A stretch of DNA of 64,000 nt from Mytilus californianus (lineage: Eukaryota). Positions within the stretch are counted from its first letter, which is position 1; each line of letters starts with the position of its first letter. Location of the stretch: assembly GCF_021869535.1 (NCBI RefSeq), contig NW_026262581.1:33976001-34040000 (forward strand). Direction: 5' to 3'. The position numbers and the translations under genes were made by a program. The notes beneath the pieces are model-generated. The model was not told the origin of the DNA, searched no databases, and saw only the letters and a list, made by a program, of their open reading frames with translations. This document shows, piece by piece, positions 6,644-54,953 of the stretch.

Positions 6644-9600
6644 TCAAGACTTCGACATGTCTGTATTGTATTCAATTAAAAGTGAAGCAATATGTTCAAA
6701 GATATTCCATTTAGTGTTCAGATCATCAATATCATCCCTATCTTTCAAAAACTTGCGTTCATATTTGATAGATTTCAAAATTTCCAAAGAAACATGAAGA
6801 GGAGATTTTCCATCGTTATCTTCTTTGGAACTATCTGCATTTCCCCCTAATAATATTTCAACTATGTTGTCGTCGCCGAATTCGCACGCTAAATACAATG
6901 GTGTCTGACCTTTACTATTCTGTAAATTAAGGTCAGATTTCCTCGAGGAAAGTATTGTTTTTACCAGTTCATAATCTCCATACCTACAGGCTAGAAGTAA
7001 CGGAGTTTCCCCTTCATTGTCACGTGCATTCACCTCTGCATTATGATCAATTAGTGATTTTGTTATCGACTTACATTTCGTAGACATTTCAAAGACAAAC
7101 ATTGGAAGAGATTTTTTGATTTTTGGTCGAAAGTGAAACGAGCGTTTATATCTCTCGCAAATTACATGAAGGGGAGTTTTACCACCGTTATCACACAATT
7201 TAACGTTTGCTCCAGTTTCAAGCAATACTTCAACTATATCTGATTTCTTGTTTTGACAAGCAAGATGTAAAGGAGACCTGTTTTCATTGTCTTGCATATT
7301 GACTTTCGCTTTGTTGCTTATAAGTAATTTACATATGGAAAGCAAACCATTTTCACAAGCTAAATGTAAAGGCGATAACCCATATTCGTCCGGTTTGGAG
7401 ATGTCTAACTGATTTTGAATCAAAAGGTTAATAATAGATATGCGATCTTCGGATTCAGGAAAATTTTCACAAGTTGCGTGAAGCAATGATCGGCCATCAT
7501 ATCTAAATTGACAAATATCGAAACCTTGTGTCAGCAAAAATTGAGCTGTCCCTAGATTTCCTCCTGTACACGCCAAATACAAGGCAAAATCTATCTCTTC
7601 AACGGAACTGAACATTGTATTTTCCATGAATAATTTAACAATGTCTGTGCACCCATTAACCGCCGCAGTGCCCATAGACCTACACTTGTCAAAAGAAGAA
7701 AATTTGTCGATACATTTCTGTACTAATAACTGAATAACATTGAAATGATTATTTAGGCAGGCAACCTCAAGAGGTGAATATATTTCATCACAAGTATTTA
7801 TTTTTGGATATATGTCTGTATTGTCCAGTAACATTTTCACAATAGCTGCTTTTCCAGATTTACAAGCCAAGTATAGAGGCGATTTATTCGGCTTTAAACC
7901 GCAAACATCTGCTGCTGTTTTATTTTCCAGCAATTGTTTTACTATATCAGCATAACCTCCATCACATGCTAGACTCAAAGGAGTATCATCGAAGCGAGAA
8001 ACACTGTTTACATCTGCATTTTTTTCTAACAACAACTTTGCTACATCTAGGTTTCCAGCTTCACACGCCAAGTGGAGAGGACAAAACTCCATCCACGTAT
8101 CGGACACATTGATGTTAGTGTCATTTGGCAGAAGTAGTTTTACTATATTCACATTTCCATTCTTACAAGCTTCGCGTAACGGTGATGTATCATCTCTATC
8201 AAGTTTACAGACATCGACATTCTTTGCAAGGAGCAATTTCACTATGTGAGCATTTCCTGCTTTACATGCCATATGTAGTGGAGAAGATTCATTTTCATGG
8301 CACAAGGAAGCGTCGGCGTCATGGTTTAATAAAATTTCTACTATATCTTGATACCCACCTTCACAAGCTTTGTATAAGGCTGATCTATTAAAGCTGTCTA
8401 TTTTATTGACCTTGCAATCCATTTTGATAAGGAATTCTACTATATCCACAAACCCCTCGGTAGCTGCTTCTATTAACGGATATGTAACGTTAGTAACTTC
8501 ATCGTCAGTTATTTCATCGTCATCATCGGTATCATAAAAGTCATCCCAATCACAATGTCTTTCGCCAGTAACCAGTTTTATCCCATTCTTGTCGATTTCA
8601 CGGAATAAATCATGCACACCTTCGGCATTGCTGTTGAGATATTCAATAAGCATTTTTCTGAATGATTCGTGGACTAATTGTTTATTATGCAGAGTACTGT
8701 AGATATCCCCTTGTTTCAAATCATCAACTAGTCTTTCAAAATATTCTACCTCCATTTCTTTTGAAAGTACAATAAAGTCGTCGTTGGGATTAGTTTTAAT
8801 GAATTCGAATATATACTTATTACCAATAAATCTTCCATTAGCATTTCTAATAAAACATTCCTTGAGATACTGTCCGCATACAATGGATGCAATGTCGTAT
8901 ATTTTGTCATGAATTAAGCTGTATGTTGTTCCAATTTTTTTCAAAAATGTACCAACTAATGTCGAGAATCCATTTTTTAAAGATAATCTTACGAGTTCTT
9001 TATCTAAATCGACATCAAAGTGTGTCGTTATTTCTTTTAGTTTATTTATTAACATTTTTGGACCCACGTTCAATCTACAGTTAAGCCACTCCTCCTCAAA
9101 CCCTTCCTCAAACAAAATACACAAAACAAAGGCACACAATTGGTGTTTGTTTTTTGAAACTATTATATGTTTTATATTTTGTTTTATAGTACCAATCGGT
9201 GATGTGAAGAAGAGTTTTAAATTTTCATGTGCTATGTTTTTAGACATTTTACACAGGAGTGGAAAAAAGTCAAAATCGCATATATGATCTACCACATCAT
9301 CAATGTTATCGCTTTTTATATATTTCTTTATCATCACTATTCTTTCCTCTGGGAGAAGACAAAGCCTTTCAGCTAGAAGATCAAATGCATTTTTAGTAAA
9401 AAGCGTTAAACTTTTAAACTGTAATTCATTAAACACCGATAGCCTACATGATATTAAAAGTTTGGCACCAATGGTTTCTTCTTTGTCAGTTGAATTTGAT
9501 TTGAATATACCGTTTAGTTCTTCTGTGAAATTTTCCCATGTATTTACTAACTGAACATCCATTGTTCCTTTACCACATATATCATCAATTACAAAAACCT

Positions 9601-9858
9601 GTTTTCTATTTTTACTGTAATAATTCATAATATCCGATGGTGCCATTAAAAATGATAGAGGTATTATATCATAATTTTTCTGTCGATGTAACTCTAAAGC
9701 AACATGGTGAATGAGAAACGATTTTCCGGTCCCGGAACTACCCGTTACAACAGCTATATTACACTTTGAAAGCCATGACATTACACGTTCTGTTGCTCTA
9801 GTTTCAACAAATGTTTCATCATCTCTGTCCCAGTCTCGGATTTTTTCTTCATGACGAT
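6644..9858 (-). CDS. Paralogue 1, coding exon 5: STAND-class (nSTAND3-like) P-loop NTPase followed by a long ankyrin-repeat array; whole protein about 1377 aa
   Basis: Acceptor tttccag|AT extends ORF 6644-9781 upstream in frame (DRHEEKIRDWDRDDETFVETRA); Walker A GSSGTGKS (9719-9742), Walker B VFVIDD; many TPLHxAC/SPLHLAC...GxxxIVxxLL ankyrin repeats. Family assignment is by recognition, not by an HMM run. Confidence 0.92.
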
Positions 9859-10254
9859 CTGGAAATTGGCAATATTAATAAACAAATTAAACCACCAAAT
9901 ATAATGTCCTTGACGACAATAAAACAATGACAATAAGGTTGCAAATATCTATTATTTGTGTATATTAATCATGGTATTATTATGCATTACCCTTGAAAAC
10001 ATATAGAGATATTTCAGAGTGAATCATTTACAAATAATCTTATTCAATGTGAAAATTGCCATTAAATATCTATTTTAACTGAATTTCCATTAATATACTG
10101 CATTTACTTATTGATTTAAAATTCTTCAATCAAGTAACATGAATCTTTGCTTAACAATAACATCACCTTTCATTTGTGTATTAATACTGCCTTGTCCTCA
10201 ATGCTCTTCGACTTCGTACTTTTTTTGGCCTTCTTAACTTTTTTTTTATTCGAG

Positions 10255-10294
10255 CGTCACTGATGAGTCTTTTGTAGACGAAACGCGTCTGGCG
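10255..10294 (+). ncRNA. Minimal type I hammerhead ribozyme motif in a short interspersed repeat (~10185-10337)
   Basis: CGUCA-CUGAUGA-GUC(UUUUGUA)GAC-GAAA-CGC-GUC/UGGCG: stem I CGUCA:UGGCG, stem II GUC:GAC, palindromic stem III ACGCGU, GUC cleavage triplet ending at 10289. Confidence 0.75.
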
Positions 10295-10703
10295 CAAATA
10301 CAAAATTTCAATCTTGGTATCTATGATGAGTTTATTTACCCTTTCTGTTTTGTTGTTTTCAATAAAGTAAACATGCTTCTACGATTGATTTACCAATAAA
10401 CATTTTGTTTCAATATGTGCAAACTGGCAAAGAAATGTTGCTTTTCTGTAAACCTAGCAATCTTTTTTTTCATTTAAATACAGACGAAACTTGTACGAGG
10501 TAAGGATATGTAACTGATTTATACCCAGAGAAAATCCTTTCATAGGAATTTATAGTTTCGCGGCGTTGACACGGACGCTGGAAGATTAATTCATGTGATT
10601 CAACTGTTCTCACATCACACATAGGATTTTTAGATTTTGGTTCATTTCTCCAAGGAAGTTTGTTCTGCTCTTGATAAGTTTATGTTCTTTTTTAAACATT
10701 TAC

Positions 10704-10934
10704 CTCTTATATGTTTTGGAATTATTTCCTCCTGATGTCGACCTATGTCTTTAATTTCTTCCTTCAGCATCCTTATTTCATCTTTTAACATGTTGTCAAC
10801 TGCAGCTTTCTTTTCCATTTCATTCTGTATGTAATTTTTCAAACTTTTTGCGTATTTTGCTAGGACACCAGTCTGTTGACAAATTTCATTAACCAATTCG
10901 AGACCAAGTGTTGTGCCCTTGAACAAATTTATCC
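10704..10934 (-). CDS. Paralogue 1, coding exon 4: helical/coiled-coil-like linker (GINLFKGTTLGLELVNEI...EEIIPKHIR)
   Basis: Acceptor ttgcag|GG, donor AGAG|GTAAAT; 231 nt, phase 1-1; E/K-rich amphipathic sequence; paralogue exon also 231 nt. Confidence 0.85.
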
Positions 10935-11256
10935 CTGCAAGCAAAAAATGGGATAAGACTTTTAACTTTGTTTATTTTATCCGCGTTTATTACGTGCAAA
11001 CTAAATATTGTTTAAATGAATGCAATAGTTTAAGTTCGTTGAGCAGGCGATATTGGCCCTAAATCAAAAATCTCTTTTTATTTCGTTACTGGTTACGTAT
11101 ACTGGCATGGTTTTTTTTAAAGTATTTATTAACAAAATACGACTCATAGACAATCTTCAACTTTATTACAAATGCGCAAAATGACCGCAATTAATGATAA
11201 TTGCAACAAAACTTAGGTCAATATAAAGAATAAAATGTCTTAATATCAAAAATTAC

Positions 11257-11425
11257 CATTGGTTTTCCATCTTGTAAGTTCGCCTAAAATGTTCTTTTCC
11301 TTAGACGATCCGAGCTTCAGACTTGTTATCAAACTTTCCATCTCTCTAAATGAATTTGAAAATTTACCATAATTCCACTCTGAAAAATTACAGTGTGCCC
11401 AAGTATTCCTGATGTTTGATCGCAC
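11257..11425 (-). CDS. Paralogue 1, coding exon 3: HEPN motif exon (VRSNIRNTWAHCNFSEW...RWKTNG)
   Basis: Acceptor ctttcag|GTG, donor AATG|GTAATT; 169 nt (phase 0 to 1); Rx4H motif RNTWAH at 11393-11410; paralogous exon has the same length. Confidence 0.85.
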
Positions 11426-12050
11426 CTGAAAGTTTACCAATAAAATGTATCGTATTAGCTACAGTTTCAGTCAAGAAAGATAAATTAAAAAAAAAATACT
11501 TGACATGCATTGATGTTCAATCAGAAGCATATAATATAACAATGGCATATCACAAACACTTCCTTTACCCATGCAAGAAATAAGAAAATATAATCAAATA
11601 ATGTCAACTGTGAAACGAAGTCGTATTACAAATTATAGAATAATTTATAACGAAAAATACAGATAATAGAATGTTCAAAGTTCAAATGTTCATACGGGTC
11701 CGTGAATGGATAGATTTCAACGTGAAATCTCTTTTAGATAATCGGTTAATACTGTGTTAGTAGAATCATTTCATGACTCTGTACAAATGGTATGAAGGAA
11801 GAAGAATGACAGGACAATAATGACACGCATGTGCACTGTTAACTTCCATGGCATTAAAAGTCACTGTGAGATATAGTCGTCTCCCACTTTTTGTATAAAA
11901 ATCTTCTCTTCTTACATTTTTGGGCAAATGAATCTAAAAACCTGATGCAAACGTTGAAAAGCTTATTAAATTGAAAAGGGTCAAATATGCATGATGGGAA
12001 TATCATACATTCCTTAATTTAATATGTTTATAATCACAAATAATACCTAC

Positions 12051-25985: not shown

Positions 25986-26143
25986 CAGAGGCGTAGCAGG
26001 GAAAGTATTTAATATTTGTACGGCAAAATGTCCTTTCTAGAAGGGTTTGTGCCATATCATAAGAATAATTGGTATGGCAATGAGGTGTTTAAAAAATAAT
26101 TGGTATGGCGAAAGTGCCTGCAGTAAAAGTTGCTACGCCCCTG
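25986..26143. mobile_element. Small MITE nested in the CACTA element
   Basis: TIR CAGAGGCGTAGC ... GCTACGCCCCTG; no clear TSD. Confidence 0.55.
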
Positions 26144-27221
26144 GCCCCCTGTAAAATAAATAGCTGTGACTCATTAGGCCACTTAGTCGAGACAAGTTTG
26201 GCTTTAGCCATACATATTATTACTTCAAAAAAACCATTTTAATTTAATAGTCTGTCTTAAAAGTGTCTTTAGTCTTTAAAAAAAATCTAAAATAAATAAT
26301 ATAAGTTAACAATACAGAACTTCGTTAACTAATGATGCCATATTGGATAGGGGGCAGATTTTCTGGAAAATGGTATTAAAATATGGGAAAACCTATGCAT
26401 GTTTCCAAGTGGCTGTTCTGTTTTAATGATGTTTTTTAGTATTTTTCATACCATTTTCACCTCCAGTATGAAAATCTGCCCCCTATTCAATATGGGGTCA
26501 TTAACCGTGAAGTCCTGTATTGCATGGAATAATATTGTAGCTGTTTTAAGTACATGTATGTACATAAATGCCAAAAATTAATTTGAATATATAAATAGTT
26601 TTTTTATATACATGTATAATATATGTAATGTTTCTTTATTTATTCTAGGAATGAAGAGCAAAAGGATATAGCAGTCTTTATATAAAATAGTTCAGGACTC
26701 CAGTTGGAAAGAAGAGCTTTTCAGTTAAAAGTATTTCCTGGGAATAAACAGGAACTTCTATAAAGGTTTTTCTGGGAAAGTTATTCAAAAGGGCAGTGAA
26801 GTGAAGGATTACATTAGACAAATATTGCTGAAGTGGTAAAATCAGACCCAAGAGATGTACAAAATTTCTACAATACATGTTACAGCTGACTTTAGCTACT
26901 TAATCACATTGACATTTGTGTGCTTTTATGTTTTCTTTACATAATTACTACAGTTCTATTAAAATTAATATTTTTATTCTTTGTCACAATTATTACTAAA
27001 AAAAATACAGCATTTTAATATGGTTTTTCATAGTCTCACTTGCATTGTACTTAAATAAGTTGTCTGTAGATGTTTACACTAGGTTTCAGGCATTTCACTT
27101 CACTTGATTGAAACAGCATTTAAATTTTTTGTTAAATTATGGCCTGAAAAATACATTTAACATTAATGATTTTACAGGAGTTTTCACAATCAGTGAATGG
27201 CTGTTTATCACACTAGTTCAT

Positions 27222-27530
27222 GTACATTTCACGGTCTTTTCACAATGGGCACATAATTTATCACGACTTTTTCACGGTGTACATTTTTGTTTTTCACAGG
27301 GTTTCTACGGTCTTTTTACCCAAGTTTTCAGTTGGCACCTTTTCACGGCCTTTTCACGACAAATAAAGGCATATACTGTACTATATCTACATTTCACGGT
27401 CTTTTCACAATGGGCACATAATGCATTATCACGACTTTTTCACGGTGTACATTTTTTTTCACAGGGTTTCTACGGTCTTTTCACCCAAGTTTTCAGGTGG
27501 CACCTCTTCACGGCCTTTTCACAAACTTTT
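27222..27530 (+). repeat. Tandem duplication (~165 bp x2) in the right subterminal region of the CACTA element
   Basis: tacatttcacggtcttttcacaatgggcacataat...cttttcacggccttttcac occurs at about 27222 and 27388. Confidence 0.8.
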
Positions 27531-28039
27531 CACAGCCTTTTCACGACAGTCATTCCACGACATTGTCACGGATAAGTTTCTCGGCCCACCGTAAATTAAC
27601 CGTGACAAACACTGTAAAAATCACCAGCATTTTACGGACATTTTCACGGCCAATCTACGGGGCATTCTTCCAGTAGTGCTAATTGTTTCGTCATCATTAC
27701 AAGAATTCCATTCTTGCTTAACCAATTTTACTCCTAACACTATTTTTGAAATGGAGTGGTCATTGTTATTGGATCTTACGTGATTTCAATGGTTAGGGTT
27801 AGTATTGCTTCACTTCTAATTGCTAACATGTTGAAGTTTTGTCTTCGGGTATTATGTTTGAACGTGAACTTTTAGTATTTAAGAACGTAACAAGACCAAT
27901 ACAGAGTCTGGACCTGCGTTGCTATATGCAATTGATTTAGGTAACATTTTCACTGGAGCATAACGTATCATTCCCTTTTACTGATGCCAAGAAAACTTTG
28001 ATAAAAACAAAAAAGCAATGTAAGCAATGTAAAATTCAA

Positions 28040-28765
28040 ACTATCAGCAAACAGGAAATGGCTATATGGCAGATGTGAAAAGGTCAAAATCAAGGCTAAA
28101 GTGACCTCACTTTGATATTTGATACACTCCCATCTCATGATTCATCACCATACCAAGTTTGATCAACCTTTGTTCTAAGGTACAAAAGTTACAGGACACA
28201 AATCAAACAAGATTGACAAAGTGACCCGCCTTTAGTATAGGAATATGACACATCTAAAGCCCATGATTCATCTGCATATTAATACAAATAAGAAGATGTG
28301 GTATGAGTGCCAATGAGACAACTCTCCATCCAAGTCACAATGTATAAAAAGTTAACAACTATAGGTCGAAGTACGGCCTTCAACACGGAGTCTTGGTTCA
28401 CACCGAACAGCAAGCTATAAAGGGCCCCAAAATGACTAGTGTAAAACATTTCAAACAAGAAAACCAACGATCTAATCTATATAAAAAAACGAGAAACGAG
28501 AAACACCTATGAACCAAACCAACAATCGACAAACACTGAACAACAGGCTCCTGGTTTAGGACAGGTGCATAAAAATGCAGCGGGTTTAAACGTTTTAACA
28601 GGATCAGCTTAAAAGTTCAATGATACAAAAGTTATGGGCCGGACATGAAGCGGGCTGGACATGCAGACAGACGGAGAGACAGACAAACAAACAGACGGAC
28701 ATGGTGATTACTTTATACCGCAAGCTTTGTTTCTTGCGAGTATACCGCAAGCTTTGTGTCTTGCG
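28040..28765 (+). mobile_element. HINE-like element interrupted by a family-A repeat, ending in a duplicated hairpin
   Basis: aaagtgacc...catgattcatc cores before 28280; CAGA/CGGA microsatellite at 28660-28700; TATACCGCAAG...CTTGCGAGTATA twice (about 28713-28772). Confidence 0.55.
28285..28600 (+). repeat. Family A copy nested in a HINE-like element
   Basis: aagaagatgtggtatgagtgccaatgagacaactctcc...ggctcctggtttaggacagg. Confidence 0.75.
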
Positions 28766-29376
28766 AGTATACAATATAATCCACCATTTTCTACATAAGG
28801 AAATTCCTGTACCAAGTCAGGAATATGACAGTAGTTTTCCATTCGTTTGATGTCTTTGAGCTTTTGACTTTGCCATTTGTTAAGGGACTTTCCGATTAGA
28901 ATATTCCTTGGAATTCGGTATTTTTTGTTATTTTACTCTTTTTTTATATCTTGTTGATAAAAAAATGTTATTTGAAAACAAGTTAATTTGCACACAAATC
29001 TTTTTACACACAAGTCTACAGATATTAAATTGACCATCAAACTTGACACTGGACGAGTTCAATTTATTTTCATCAATGAAAAGAAAAGTTCGATTTGCCA
29101 GTTATTATTTTTTCACAATTTTACACTATTAGTATAGCATATTCATCAGAAATGTGAGAAACATTTCAACTGATAGTGCGTTTTAATCTCCAAAACGTAT
29201 TATTTCGAAGACAAACATTAAAATATATTATCCTCGTGTCTACGCAAGGTAGAAAGCTTGTGTGTTCTAACAGAAAATAACGGACGGTAACACTTTTCTG
29301 ACTTGTTATGCTGTAATTATGCAACAATTTTATAAAGTGTTATTTTCCTTTATATTTGTTTTCGTATTTCTAATAC

Positions 29377-29607
29377 CTCGTATATGTTTTGGGATTATTT
29401 CCTCTTGACGTTGGTTAATGTCTTTGATTTTTTCGTTCAGGGTCATTAGTTCATCTTGTATCACTTTGTCAGTTGCATCTCTCTTTTCTATTTCATTCTC
29501 TAGGATGAATTTCAAAACTTTTGCATATTTTGCTAAGACACTCGTCTCTTGACGAATTTCTTTAATCAATTCTAGACCCAGGATAGTGCCTTTTAAAAAC
29601 TTGGTAT
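29377..29607 (-). CDS. Paralogue 2, coding exon 4: helical/coiled-coil-like linker
   Basis: Acceptor tttgcag|AT, donor CGAG|GTATTA; 231 nt; DTKFLKGTILGLELIKEIRQ...EEIIPKHIR. Confidence 0.85.
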
Positions 29608-32159
29608 CTGCAAAGAAACAAAAATGGCAATATCATTTATATTTGAAGCTTAGTTATTCTTTCCGCAATATCAACGGTCTAGCGGACGTCGATTGTCCAT
29701 GTCTATCAGCTTCAAATTTAACATTGAGCAAATGAATGCAATTTGGTAAGTTCGTTAAGCTTAAATGCCCCTAATAAATACAACATTTATTTTTTTCTAT
29801 GCGTTATTCTATTTTATCAAAATCTAGATTACTACTTGAAAAACATTTCAATATCGTATTTTAAGGATGTTCTCCGCAAAAACCAAAAACAGAATACAAC
29901 ATAAATAATGTCTTTATTAATAGAAAAGTGACTTGTATAATTATAAAAAAAAGTATTTTAAAAAATCATGATAGTTCTGAGTGCTTAATTCTAAGCTACA
30001 GTCGACAAAAGATGGATATTTTCGTGGAAAAAGTTGTTTCTAATTTTCACAAGAATTTCTTTTATTTGCAGAAATGAGAGTTAAACTATGTGAAAAATAT
30101 TTTTTGAATAATTTTGACAATGGTTAAGCAGAAGTGTGTATCAGGAATAAGGTGTTAAAAAACACATGAGTTGTCCTGGAAACATTTTTATTAACAGATA
30201 TGGAGAAGAAGATTGAAAACATGAGAGGTGAACACCTTTTAATTCAAAACGATCTAGCCAACTTCGAAATGGGTTTTTACAAAAAGCAACCTCACAAATT
30301 AAATAACATTAGTTTTATTGCACTGTATGTAAATATTGATAGCTAAATAAATATTTGATTGGTTGCAATTTTTCAATGTTTAAGGGACTAAACATCATTG
30401 TCCACTCTGAACATCATATCACGTATACCTTGAGCAACGTAACGAGCGAGTTATTTAAGCATTTAAACGCACATACGCTCCGAAATTAATTCATGAAGAC
30501 GTCAGTTTAAGAGAGGCGAAAGATACCAAAGGGACATTCAAACTCATAAGTCGAAAATAAACTGACAACGTCATGTTGGGTACCCAAATTGCACCTATTT
30601 TGACAGTTTATTTATGATTCAGACGAAAGTTTCCATTCTCGGTTTATTTTGTAGATGTATCCTTATTTACTATATAGTTCCACCAATTTAGTTTGGAATC
30701 ATAGAAAAATGGGTTTGAACTGACCTCCAAACGATCAATTGATGAGGAGTACCCAAATTGCATCCATGCTTAAATTCACATCCTTAAAAATCGTATTACA
30801 GATGTTTTGTTTTATTTCTTCCAATATTTAGAACAATTTGACGTTAGTCCATGCTTACTATTCATTTTTTAAGAAATGGATGATTGCAACATATTTTATT
30901 TGCTCATTTGTAAAACTTTGACTTTAAATGATTTTTTGTGGACGTCGCATGGCGACATTTCTGTAGATTTTACTCTTTCCAGTGAATACTTCATCTGTTG
31001 ATATATACTGTGAAAGTTTTGTGCATATCTATATATAATTAGCTACGTTAAAAGACGTGCATAATGTGAAATCATAAAAATACAAATTGATTAGTCTCTA
31101 AAAAAAAGTAAAAATTTAACTAGAATGAAATGTAAATCCATATATTTCTATTCTGTTCTAACATATTAAATGAACATTTTCAAAATTAGTCGCACTGTTG
31201 TAAAGAATGCACGTAAAATCGGGGAAAATATGTAAGAATTGTCTAAAACTCATCATAACTCCAAATCCAATCTTTAGATTAAAATAGATATATATTTCCT
31301 TTGCTAATTTCTGTTTAATTAATATAAGATTATTAAGGGGTTACCGACTTACGGTTCAAAATATTTAATATTCTATTAATGTGGTTGTACCGAAAAATGA
31401 CAAAACATTTTGTCTTCGGATTTACAGCACTTTCAACATTACACTTATGTTGATGTCTTGGAAGATTTTTTTTCATTATGAAGACCACTTTGAATAATGT
31501 ATACAGACACAAAACAAATTATCATTCAAGTATGATTGTTTAAGTCAACAAATCGGAAATTCTCTTGACAACATTTTTTTGATTTAAAGAAAAATCTATG
31601 AAGTGATAATGGAGAAATGAGAATTTTGGGTGTATTTTTGGATAGTATATTCCAGATTTACGTGCATTCTCTATAACTTTGCAACTATTTCAAGAATTTG
31701 AGTTCACTAATTATATGTCAGAAAGCAAAAGTAATAACATATCTATTATTTCATTAGAGTTTAACATTTTCAAGTTGTATGCAAAATCTTACTCAATTTG
31801 CCCATTAACTATTCCTTTAATTTTGGTATAAAATACATTTTCTCTTTGAATACGTTTTTGGCGAGGGCTGCACTCTTTATCAATTCTCAATATTATTGAG
31901 TCAAACAATCAATAATTTGTGTTTAGTACCAATACGACCGTGCATCGTACTTTCCTCTTTTATAGTATACATCAATCATTAGACATGGTTTTTTTTTCAA
32001 TATTTCTTAAGTATGTTTTACAAATAATCTTTACCACCAATGTGCAAAATTACTGCAAATAGCCCATTAATAACGGTTACAAAGAAATTAGTGCGTACGT
32101 AGAGAAAATGGTGTCTTTTTTGTTATTTCAATTTGTTTGATTAAACTTATTTCATATAC

Positions 32160-32328
32160 CATTGGTTTCCCATTTTGTAATCTCGTCTAAAGTGGACTGT
32201 TTTACAGATGCTTTCAGATCTAGACTGCTAATAAAATTTCCCATCTCTGTAAATGATGTTGCAAATTTTCCTTTATCCCATTCTTGGAAGTTACAGTGCG
32301 CCCACGGATTTCTGATGTTGGATCGAAT
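32160..32328 (-). CDS. Paralogue 2, coding exon 3: HEPN motif exon (IRSNIRNPWAHCNFQEW...KWETNG)
   Basis: Acceptor ctttcag|ATT, donor AATG|GTATAT; 169 nt; RNPWAH at 32296-32313. Not in the ORF track; translated by hand. Confidence 0.85.
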
Positions 32329-33459
32329 CTGAAAGTGTATCCAAAATATAGCATTTAAGTTACTATTTCAGCTAAAAAAGGAAAAAAACATGAATTGGTG
32401 TTAATGTAATAGCATGGTACATGTCAATGAAATATCCAAATACTCATCTTATTAACTTGCATGTTGATGTATTTTAAGAAAATTAAAATCTTAAGTAAGT
32501 AAAAAGTTAAGTTATTGTACACTGACTGCATGGAAAAGGTAACATATGCTGAATGGATACATTTTGCTAGAAAGTTGCATATATAAGTCAATCGTATAGA
32601 TATAACCAATAGTGTATACTGTAAATTCATAAATTATTGCGAGGTTTTTATAATGCGAATAATGCGACTACTTGAGTATGGCAATAATAAGAACAAGCTT
32701 TCTGATATCAAATACATATATCGATGTATCTTTTCCTAAAATCGCAAATATTAAACTCTCATTTTTGTTAATTCTTCAAAAATCGCAATCAATTCTAAAT
32801 TTACAGTTTCCGAAGTTTTTTGTAAATTGACCCATTCACAAAAATAGTAAAGTAACGTGTTAATGACAACACTACCACATTCATGAAGACGACGTCATCG
32901 ACACCGTAAAAGTAAAATATATATCTAGCTTGGTTGGTTTCGTGTTGCTTTGTCATTAATTTTATATGTTGTATTTTGATGACCGTTGTTTGTCTCTTCG
33001 TCGTTTTTTTTTTATTTGGCGTTGTTTGTTTGACTTGGACTTATGAGTTTTGTCTCTCACTCCAACTATTGCAAAGCATGTGCATTATGTTACCAAACAA
33101 CCACCAATCCATGATTCGAAAAAATTAATATAAAGTATTAATATATCAATAGACAATAGTCAATATTAGCTTCAAAAGATTCATTTATTTACCCCCACTT
33201 TTTTAATTAAGAAATAGTTCGTTATTACAACTAACACAAGAATTAAACGTGAACATGAAATAATAAGTCTCGATGATTCAGTGAAAATTTTGCAATTTAG
33301 GACACTAAACTTGGAAGATTTGAAAGGCGCAGGTAATAACAAATCAAGTAATAAACACTAAAATAACAGAAAAAGCAAACTATTATCTACCAGGACACCA
33401 TACATGTGATGATAGTATCAATACTCGTGCATGTATTGTATTGCTAAACATTACAAAAA

Positions 33460-33464
<5 letters not shown>

Positions 33465-33497
<33 letters not shown>
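33465..33497. repeat. (TA)n microsatellite in intron 2 of paralogue 2
   Basis: Uninterrupted TA run. Confidence 0.9.
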
Positions 33498-33616
33498 AAG
33501 TTAACAAAGTATCAATAGAGCGATATCAAAATAAAGATGAATAATACACGTTAAATTATGGTTCAACAGGGAGTATTGCTATACAGTAATAATATTCATA
33601 ATCAATTAATACCTAC

Positions 33617-34032
33617 CATTTCAGCTTTTGAACGCACCGCTACAGGAAACTCGTCGATATTAATAATTATCCCAAGGAGAGCTGATGAATCGCATGAATC
33701 GTCTATACCTTGGTACTTTGCCATGTGTGTTTGAAGAAATAGCTTGGATAAATCCAGAGGATTTTTGACTCGGAAATCATAAAGTTTAGTACTTTTTCCA
33801 AAGATATCATTATTCTTATTTATCGTCTCATAATTTAGATTTGTCCCCGACAAGTATGTTTTTATGTAGGGATAAATTTGTTTGTCAATCTTGTATTTTC
33901 TTGTTAAGCGGTAATAAAGCTTTATAAGAATGGGTAAAATATACTCTCTTAGAACAGGAGATATTACAGTGTGCAAACAAATTCCAACAGTTAGCCATCT
34001 TTTCGAGTAGTCGTCTAAATCCTCCGACGGTC
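33617..34032 (-). CDS. Paralogue 2, coding exon 2: N-terminal part of HEPN-like domain
   Basis: Acceptor ttgtag|GA, donor ATG|GTAGGT; 416 nt; GPSEDLDDYSKRWLTVGICLH...; includes ORF 33602-33976. Confidence 0.85.
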
Positions 34033-35266
34033 CTACAATGTAAAAAGAGTACGCAGAGATGTTTTATCTAACACCTTTATAAAAAAAATTACTATACTTT
34101 AACCTGAAATTGAAACTTAGATATCATCTAGAAAAAGGGCAGAATTAAATATAATATTATTTGGCTTTCTCTTTTAAAATGAAGGGGCAAAATTTCATTT
34201 TAGTATCTTTGTATTACTAAATACGTGTCCAAATAATGTTTAAATGTTTACAAAATGTAACTTGGTATGTCCGTCCGGTCGTCTGTCTGTATGTCTGTTT
34301 GTCCAACAAATATTTTTGTCACACTTTTTTCAGTAACGTAAACACGAATGACTTGTTATTTGATTAGCAGCTTAACAATGACAGTAAATTGTGAAACATC
34401 CATGCATCGCCTTGTCAGCATTGTTTTTTTTTTTTATTCAGCATATACAGTTAATATAAAAAAGAGTAAGCTTAGAACAAGTTACTAAAAATGTTCGTAT
34501 AATTCAGCTTTTCTGAATATGCGACCCTACTACTGTCCACACCATGACATTTGAAGAACACACATTACTATTAAAAAATGTGACTAAAAGGACTTTTTTA
34601 TGCAATTAATATTACAATAAAGAATGTCCGTGTTAAAAAATTGCTTTGCTCGCTAAATTCGTACCCAATATTATACTTCTAATCATTGGCCACAATGAAA
34701 TTAAAAGGATAAGAATTATCTTTTTGGGACTTCGTTATGTTTACGGAGAGCCCTTCACTTCACCTTAATTTTTTCTGCAACATCAAGTAATAACAGATTA
34801 AACTTCAACAAAGATTACCATCCGACATGTTTGTAACCAAACAAAGTGAAGAATTCCGATAAGAAAATTCCTTCATTACCGATTTTTATTTTATATTGGA
34901 CGAAATCCGCATTGATAAAAATAAATGGCAAGGATGGCAACATTTTTATAATTCTTTTGTTGGTCCCTAGCTTATTTCGGCAGATATATTAAACTTCAGT
35001 CCGCTCCTTAAACATATATTCCAACTCAACTTTGTTGAATTTAATAGAACTTTTAAGGCCAAATTTGTGTTTTTGTTACCCTTTATTTTGTATCTACTTC
35101 CTGGTATGATTTTTATTGACACATTATGGCATGTTTAGTTTATGGTTTTGTGTGTGCGGTTTTTTGTCACTTCCTTGCTAGCTTACTGATAGGTTTGGGA
35201 ATTTCACTTGACACAAACAAATAAAAACAGACATGGCATAGTTACATATCAGTAATTTAGATGTAC

Positions 35267-35366
35267 CTGTTATACGAACAACTTTCGTCTCTATGGAAGT
35301 AACTGCATCCTATAAACCTGGTGGGAAGGCTCGCTTTAAGAACGAAGAGTGTATGTCTTCATCCAT
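35267..35366 (-). CDS. HEPN-STAND-ankyrin paralogue 2, coding exon 1, with in-frame TAG at codon 19 (MDEDIHSSFLKRAFPPGL*DAVTSIETKVVRIT-G)
   Basis: Same length (100 nt), Kozak context and phase-1 donor (ACAG|GTACAT) as 14663-14762; TAG at 35310-35312 aligns with GAA in paralogue 1. Confidence 0.65.
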
Positions 35367-54275: not shown

Positions 54276-54528
54276 ATCAAAGTTGAAAATTCTGAAACGT
54301 TCACGTGAAGTTAGAACATTTAAACTTGACAGACATTTAAATAACTGTATTACAGTGAATCATGTACGAGTCGAGAAGTCATTGCCTTATAAGAATTCGT
54401 GTACTTACTTTATCTATAACTCTTCTTATTAAATATTAGAACTAGTAATTGAAATGTGTAAGTAATATAGGGGGAACTGAGAAACGTTACATTGTATACC
54501 GTACTCATCGAGATATTTTTTTCCCCAG

Positions 54529-54953
54529 ATAATTGTAGCTATCCAAAACTAAAAGAGATTCCTGCCTTTAGTGCATCATTGACAAATTCAAAAGTTCTTG
54601 GTGCCACCGAAATTGTAAAGTTCGACAAAGTTTGGACAAACAATGGAAACGATTATGACCCAAATACTGGAATATTTCAGGCGCCTTTTAAAGGCGTGTA
54701 TCAGTTCTCCTTCACAGTAATGTCCAGCAGAGGGAGGGATTTACTTGTTTACCTGTGGCAGAATGAAACCCGTTTGGTATCTGTATTTCCTGGTACTGGT
54801 TATAATGAAGGAACGGCTAATATGGTGTTAAATCTGAAAAAGAACGACAGAGTTTACGTCAAATGTGGCGGAAGCGGAATCGGATACATTCACACAGGCA
54901 ATGGCGCTTGGTACAGCATGTTTTCTGGATATCTCATACATGCAACTAAATAA
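54529..54953 (+). CDS. C1q-domain gene B, exon 3 (globular C1q domain); secreted protein of 184 aa
   Basis: Acceptor ttccccag|AT; PAFSASL...KFDKVWTNNGNDYDPNTGIF...GVYQFSF...FSGYLI; closely similar to gene A exon 3. Confidence 0.93.

Follow-up and report, generated by a model that had tools for sequence, protein, structure and literature searches.

A mussel STAND NTPase-ankyrin gene with a predicted HEPN head of the CXorf38/Swt1-like kind, and a tandem paralogue with a disabled head, in Mytilus californianus

Proteins of the STAND class undergo NTP-dependent oligomerisation when released by their ligand, and HEPN RNases have a composite active site that forms across a dimer. Genes in which a HEPN head is joined to a STAND switch are abundant in bivalves, cnidarians and amphioxus, and we know of no animal STAND or NLR-like protein with such a head that has been tested at the bench. 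The 2013 survey of HEPN proteins listed CXorf38 heads fused to NACHT, ankyrin, CARD and DEATH modules in amphioxus and cnidarians along with DZIP3 heads on NACHT and ankyrin modules, a group expanded in oyster; it proposed an RNase-L-like defence for the animal HEPN-NACHT fusions and pointed out their likeness to bacterial HEPN-STAND proteins (PMC3710099). Kaur et al. (2021) described HEPN, STAND and ankyrin modules in bivalve expansions (PMC8195603), and Takeuchi et al. (2022) reported that over 50 NACHT proteins of Pinctada begin with a DZIP3-HEPN head and described them as tripartite, NLR-like receptors which may degrade viral or transposon RNA (PMC9646362). HEPN is also found among the effector heads of bacterial NACHT proteins (Kibby et al.). 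Here we describe a locus of this type in the mussel Mytilus californianus. The window analysed, 64,000 nucleotides of contig NW_026262581.1 whose own coordinates are used throughout, contains two related genes in head-to-tail order on the minus strand, copy A (LOC127719286) and copy B (LOC127719309), both annotated in RefSeq as uncharacterised proteins. An earlier interpretation by a model that saw only the DNA (hereafter the sequence-only reading) held that the function looked uncharacterised, which is true of the RefSeq annotation and of bench work, but the same functional proposal had already been published in 2013 (PMC3710099) and 2022 (PMC9646362). The layout and the RNase-L-like idea are thus already in the literature (2013, 2021, 2022), and the locus adds an example and not a concept; what is added here is the subfamily of the head, the swapping of heads where two exons meet, splice variants without the catalytic exon and the independent decay of the head in the copy B lineage.

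Copy A, as judged from its sequence and from structural models, is a protein of five parts: a HEPN head with an RNxWAH motif and an upstream Asp, a helical linker, an nSTAND3 NTPase, a helical and winged-helix-like region, and at least 13 ankyrin repeats. The gene was delineated from two long minus-strand open reading frames (ORFs), 6644-9781 in copy A and 20910-23855 in copy B, which are 100% identical to RefSeq LOC127719286 and LOC127719309, respectively, and whose open frames extend slightly upstream, each as far as an AG acceptor (9858 and 23929). When the two upstream regions were compared, four conserved blocks per copy emerged, and a search of both copies found exactly one AG...GT-bounded open exon for each of the exon lengths given in the sequence-only reading. 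These lengths, the GT-AG borders and the identity of the intron phases between the two copies were all confirmed by a splice-site and frame check. The whole coding span of copy A (6644..14762, minus strand), established by splice sites, RefSeq and RNA contigs, comprises exon 1 at 14762-14663 (100 nt), exon 2 at 12469-12051 (419 nt), exon 3 at 11425-11257 (169 nt), exon 4 at 10934-10704 (231 nt) and exon 5 at 9858-6644 (3215 nt). The spliced product, 1377 residues long, matches RefSeq isoform X1 (XP_052081263.1) at every residue. Copy B (20910..35366, minus strand) has five homologous exons, at 35366-35267 (100 nt), 34032-33617 (416 nt), 32328-32160 (169 nt), 29607-29377 (231 nt) and 23929-20910 (3020 nt). 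The five exons join in frame in both copies, as had been claimed, except that in copy B the frame is broken by a TAG at codon 19 of exon 1; the proposed tandem pair of full HEPN-STAND-ankyrin genes accordingly reduces to copy A, copy B being unable to give a full-length protein in this assembly. No additional paralogue copies or stray exons were found within the 64-kb window.

The splicing of copy A could be compared with contigs of RNA runs over positions 9300-14900. In contigs of run X1 all four joints lie at the predicted bases (12468>14662, 11423>12049, 10933>11256 and 9858>10704), with CT..AC ends on the plus strand, and the junctions uniting exons 2-4 with exon 5 are therefore seen in RNA for this copy. 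The base differences listed for this run number none in the pieces of exons 5, 3 and 2 and two in the piece of exon 4.

The head is encoded by exons 2 and 3 of copy A (11257..12469, minus strand; residues ~34-229), and the relatives, the AlphaFold2 (AF2) model and the fold match described below indicate that it is almost certainly a HEPN domain, belonging to a CXorf38/Swt1-like subfamily that the curated models miss and not to the DZIP3 kind. An exhaustive HMMER search with residues 30-232 recovered 429 representative clusters, and the relatives include many free-standing proteins of ~200-300 residues that bear this domain. Most of the 84 full-length matches carry the motif, in the usual form RNxW[AG]H. 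Across an alignment of 61 full-length relatives, at 29-56% identity, R179, N180, W182 and H184 of this motif are invariant and D149 is nearly so. The motif reads RNTWAH in copy A (R179-H184; 11393..11410, minus strand) and RNPWAH in copy B (R178-H183; 32296..32313, minus strand), in exon 3 in both cases. The AF2 model built from the relatives' alignment is all-alpha, with a predicted local distance difference test score (pLDDT) of 95.6 and a predicted template modelling (TM) score of 0.90, and it puts R150-H155 (domain numbering) where helix 136-154 ends, ahead of a loop and of helix 163-180; the HEPN survey gives the Rx4-6H motif this very place, at a helix end and the beginning of the following loop (PMC3710099). 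When the model was compared with the Swiss-Prot models by Foldseek, the mouse CXorf38 homologue came out on top (probability 1.00, TM score 0.66, residues 15-200 against 16-211), and the next match had a probability of 0.08. The CXorf38 family, which is DUF4559 in Pfam, was classed as Swt1-like HEPN in 2013 (PMC3710099), and a 2026 preprint models its catalytic pair as the His of RNEIMH together with an Asp 28 residues upstream. Scanned singly, 38 of the 61 relatives match HEPN_Swt1 (best 6.9e-6) and 23 match DUF4559 (best 1.7e-7), and Atlas neighbours carry HEPN_DZIP3, DUF4559 or HEPN_Swt1. The N-terminal HEPN-like domain of the sequence-only reading is therefore borne out by the conservation among relatives, by the CXorf38 fold match and by a model that is all-alpha with the motif where HEPN domains have it. 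The catalytic capacity of the head we infer from motif conservation only.

Other searches helped to delimit the subfamily. Pfam scans of the single exons and of the spliced head gave no curated HEPN call, a Foldseek comparison of the head with the PDB returned nothing significant, and a profile search of PDB sequences returned nothing beyond a chance match to USP7 (E value 1.6). A DZIP3-type head (PF18738) was considered and rejected: the head encoded in the window had no match to this family, one of the 61 relatives matched it at an E value of 0.016, and a profile-profile comparison with the DZIP3 heads of the paralogues reached a probability of 7.8%, with only the motif helix aligned. The Zn ribbon of the CXorf38 description was not recovered either, since the (nearly) invariant columns of the 61 relatives hold no set of four conserved Cys/His, and the insert of the head at 52-120 is modelled without a ribbon. 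Finally, no kinase or KEN match appeared in any Pfam scan, which places the protein outside the RNase L/Ire1 KEN group.

Downstream of the head, exon 4 of copy A (10704..10934, minus strand) encodes a predicted helical, coiled-coil-like linker (residues ~230-306) with weak coiled-coil-type Pfam matches only. The NTPase core (9392..9811, minus strand) matches Pfam nSTAND3 (PF20720) with 71.3 bits, and that of copy B (23406..23882, minus strand) with 78.7 bits, against a cut-off of 27.2 bits. Both copies retain GSSG[TA]GKS (T in copy A, A in copy B), VFVIDD and LLISCR; on the minus strand, Walker A lies at 9719-9742 in copy A and at 23790-23813 in copy B, and Walker B of copy A at 9581-9598, with the LLISCR motif (Arg445) after it. 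The ankyrin array of copy A (6647..8500, minus strand; residues ~760-1377) matches the Pfam Ank families at an E value of 1e-103 and shows at least 13 clear repeats as counted by pattern. In copy B (20913..22622, minus strand) there are at least 11 clear repeats, and a 67-residue deletion amounts to two ankyrin repeats fewer than in copy A. The NACHT score, 16.3 bits, is below the cut-off of 26.7 and LRR matches were absent, so the protein is not an NLR in the strict sense. The AF2 model of residues 300-790 (pLDDT 85.7) matches NOD2, Dark/Apaf-1, NLRP3, NLRP9 and SAMD9 at a Foldseek probability of 1.00, and also a plant resistosome, ORC, DnaA and RFC; such a pattern is expected when a predicted STAND or AAA+ core is accompanied by helical and winged-helix modules. 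Among PDB sequences, a profile of the NTPase block found ankyrin proteins only. Pfam, the motifs, the AF2 models and the fold searches thus uphold the previously proposed helical linker, P-loop NTPase and ankyrin array, and the body is, by sequence and model, an nSTAND3 STAND NTPase with intact Walker motifs and a sensor-type Arg, followed by ankyrin repeats.

The transcripts of copy A are not uniform. An internal donor in exon 3 (10933>11367) gives RefSeq isoform X2, from which 37 head residues are missing, and complete skipping of exon 3 (10933>12050) was found in a 4151-nt contig of RNA run X2 and also in run X4. By run, exon 3 is included in X1, absent from the only long transcript contig of X2 and mixed in X4. 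The exon-3-skipped contigs are ~97.5% identical to the window and therefore belong to a different allele or to a very close paralogue; in the reference allele the skip would cause a frame shift and an immediate stop. In RefSeq isoform X3 exon 1 is followed directly by exon 3. Isoform X4, whose start lies in exon 4, is head-less and probably derives from exon-3-skipped transcripts. One could imagine that exon 3, whose 169 nt hold the whole Rx4H motif, is a cassette exon and that regulated splicing serves as a safety switch between an armed RNase receptor and a HEPN-less NTPase-ankyrin protein (isoform X4) able to restrain the armed form, an idea to which we attach little credence. If true, the splicing switch and the exon-level swapping of heads between near-identical bodies would amount to modular arming and disarming of NLR-like animal receptors.

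Two short intron stretches of copy A, 10235-10421 and 12479-12852, show an RNA contig depth in the thousands with reads that fit only partly, and probably represent a repeat that is abundant and transcribed. The introns of copy B contain related pieces, one of them inverted (12788-12722 against 30509-30575, 89.6%). Neither stretch matched Rfam, which gave zero matches within the window as a whole.

Sequence comparisons show copy A to be part of a large lineage-specific expansion whose members combine one and the same body with interchangeable heads. Its closest paralogues are 60-66% identical in the body and have a clear DZIP3-type HEPN head instead (E value 1e-38); three of them (P0004, P0005 and P0017) match PF18738 at E values of 1e-22 to 1e-39. 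Between copy A and the DZIP3-headed P0004 the similarity begins abruptly at residue ~281, near the exon 4/5 border, and stands at 69% beyond that point, with none detectable before. Other Mytilus genes carry CARD, NDK or DUF4559-like heads on the same nSTAND3-ankyrin body, and the HEPN type of copy A is fused to NACHT-LRR in Branchiostoma (amphioxus) and to NB-ARC/TPR/beta-helix modules in Nematostella. Since the heads vary on one body and the same head is found on other switches, the head takes the place of an exchangeable effector or adaptor, and the short exons at the 5' end serve as a swappable head cassette.

In sea anemones (Actinia and Exaiptasia; P0163 and P0201) the same HEPN type stands at the C-terminus of CAP-Gly/Roc-COR proteins, with a GTPase switch instead of the STAND ATPase. 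Bacterial counterparts were sought in ENA assemblies, and the nSTAND3-ankyrin ORFs obtained, 25-27% identical and with no called head, lie in gene-sparse contigs and were set aside as probably eukaryotic; they are silent on a bacterial origin. The ORF of 1335 residues at 8001-12008 of ENA contig ctg25713l (L001), which shares 26% identity with copy A across 95% of the query, sits in a 521-kb contig with few called genes and is probably a large exon of a related gene from another eukaryote and not a bacterial homologue.

Copy B is, as read from this assembly, a diverged paralogue with a disabled head, which would yield an N-terminally truncated protein at best. Its premature TAG (35310..35312, minus strand) replaces a codon that is GAA in copy A and specifies Glu in the M. 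coruscus orthologue, and interrupts a reading frame of 1311 codons of which the other 1292 are open. The RefSeq protein of LOC127719309 has 1175 residues and starts at Met137 of the earlier five-exon model; this start falls within the head domain, whose long first helix is thereby lost. A further candidate for exon 1, with an ATG start, at 35655-35556 was ruled out, as its ATG lies outside the open frame. In M. coruscus the orthologue of copy B (CACVKT020005621.1; 1025-1186, 4173-4328 and 5728-6120) has the Glu codon, but its exon 2 is interrupted by a deletion of 42 nt with three in-frame stops, and its motif is RNPRAH, the invariant Trp having been lost (W-to-R). The NTPase-ankyrin exon is still open in the B lineage. 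The TAG in M. californianus and the different lesions in M. coruscus indicate that the head of this lineage was damaged independently in the two species. It therefore seems probable that copy A alone is a working gene of this type and that copy B is an allele that is null or in decay, or else encodes no more than a truncated, HEPN-defective NTPase-ankyrin protein serving as a decoy or regulator. Such a view has to accommodate the state of the rest of the gene. The copies share 67% amino-acid identity, and their ratio of non-synonymous to synonymous substitution rates (Ka/Ks) is 0.38 overall and ~0.4 in every region, which, at the level of the coding sequences, shows purifying selection in every region between them. 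For codons 34-136, upstream of the RefSeq start, the value is 0.41, so that this part was coding during most of the history of copy B. With the remaining codons open, the stop of copy B may be a recent or segregating variant, or another first exon may be used.

Two further features of the B lineage may be recorded here. Over exon 1 and the 5' half of exon 2, Ks between the copies is 0.23-0.25, as against 0.5-0.8 elsewhere (12051-14762 against 33617-35366), and DNA identity is 85% around exon 2, flanks included; this is a hint of gene conversion affecting the 5' end. A second exon-1-like remnant, with a stop, is present in the M. coruscus orthologue ~3 kb downstream of exon 1, between exon 1 and exon 2.

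For copy A itself we consider that a cytosolic, NLR-like STAND protein, in which a ligand sensed by the ankyrin repeats leads to NTP-dependent oligomerisation and to a HEPN dimer RNase, is the most fitting account of the layout, with a probability of about 55%. The ankyrin array would bind a pathogen- or stress-derived ligand, the binding would release NTP-dependent oligomerisation of the STAND module, oligomerisation would pair the HEPN heads into a composite dimer site, and the paired heads would cut viral or host RNA, resulting in translation arrest or cell death. Both the RNase activity and the ligand gating we infer by analogy. Several considerations weigh against this scheme. We are aware of no CXorf38-like or DZIP3-like HEPN domain with a known RNase activity, and the HEPN domain of DZIP3 has been reported as an RNA binder. 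The HEPN domains of sacsin are likewise reported as RNA binders (PMC13669270). The Pfam matches of the copy A head are sub-threshold (HEPN_Swt1 at an E value of 0.17, DUF4559 at 0.056). The matches of the head to solved HEPN structures, to the C-terminal domain of yeast Swt1 (4pqz) with a Z score of 6.5 over 116 residues and to Csm6 (4rgp) with 6.1, agree with the assignment but are both within helical-bundle noise. Some transcripts lack the catalytic exon 3 or part of the head, and the 6% of raw RNA-seq run X21 that was sampled contained no reads on the copy A exons.

The main rival to the RNase account is a head that is not a nuclease but an RNA-binding or homotypic adaptor domain, which would sense RNA or recruit other HEPN proteins while the output is produced elsewhere. 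The RNA binding reported for sacsin is in line with this, as are the modelling of CXorf38 as possibly autoinhibited in the 2026 preprint, the many free-standing proteins with the domain, which are possible partners, and the presence of CARD, an adaptor, at the same position in paralogues. We nevertheless hold it to be unlikely: R, N, H and the upstream Asp are strictly kept across the 61 diverged relatives, as expected of an active site, whereas HEPN families without activity have as a rule lost the motif (table in PMC3710099). It might also be supposed that the gene has no role in defence and encodes a lineage-expanded ankyrin/NTPase scaffold with a housekeeping or developmental task, the HEPN head being engaged in normal RNA processing in the way that the eukaryotic HEPN proteins Las1 and Swt1 act in RNA processing and surveillance. 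This seems improbable in view of several traits typical of conflict systems, namely head swapping within a large lineage-specific expansion, the same head on NACHT-LRR, NB-ARC and Roc-COR bodies, CARD heads on sister genes, and tandem duplication with decay (PMC8195603, PMC9646362).

Elsewhere in the window, a 153-residue ORF on the plus strand (54492-54953) contains a complete C1q domain (Pfam E value 1e-26); mussels have many C1q-domain genes, and the ORF is presumably an exon that belongs to one of them.

Copy A lends itself to a bench test, being a transcript-supported protein of 1377 residues with intact motifs and a confidently modelled head. Of the systems already described, the HEPN-NACHT-repeat proteins of Pinctada fucata are alike in the N-terminal Rx4-6H HEPN domain, the central STAND NTPase and the C-terminal repeats, as well as in their bivalve-specific expansions, tandem copy-number-variable arrays and the proposed cutting of viral or transposon RNA. 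They differ in their modules, with a DZIP3-type head (PF18738), NACHT and LRR/TPR/WD40 repeats there and a CXorf38/Swt1-like head, nSTAND3 and ankyrin repeats here. The CXorf38 family shares with copy A the best fold match (mouse), an RNxxxH-type motif (RNEIMH in human) and a conserved Asp ~28-30 residues upstream, whereas the DUF4559 score of copy A is sub-threshold and the 61 relatives show no conserved Zn-ribbon-like Cys set; moreover, vertebrate CXorf38 is small, stand-alone or linked to a double-stranded RNA-binding domain. Should the RNase account be correct, it would also suggest a function for the human orphan CXorf38 family.

RNase L resembles the mussel protein in uniting an ankyrin sensor and a HEPN RNase in one animal protein, and its activity requires ligand-driven dimerisation. 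In RNase L, however, the ankyrins stand at the N-terminus and bind 2-5A, a pseudokinase serves as the dimerisation module, the KEN domain is C-terminal and a STAND NTPase is absent, so that in the mussel protein the order is reversed and a P-loop switch is placed in the middle. SAMD9 and SAMD9L offer an animal precedent of another kind, a STAND-like NTPase whose N-terminal region, an RNase-type effector, stops translation. Of the PDB matches to our NTPase model, SAMD9 had the highest query TM-score (0.39); its effector is of the AlbA type and its sensor region TPR/OB, and the likeness seen is one of fold. The bacterial Avs and bNACHT proteins share the effector-NTPase-sensor order, a likeness by layout only, and HEPN is listed among the effector heads of bacterial NACHT and STAND proteins (PMC3710099; Kibby et al.), though the sensors of the bacterial STAND defence proteins are mostly TPR-like and recognise phage proteins. 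If the HEPN head of copy A does prove to be a ligand-gated RNase, the gene would represent a one-protein pathway from sensor to RNase in animals, parallel to the STAND defence of bacteria.

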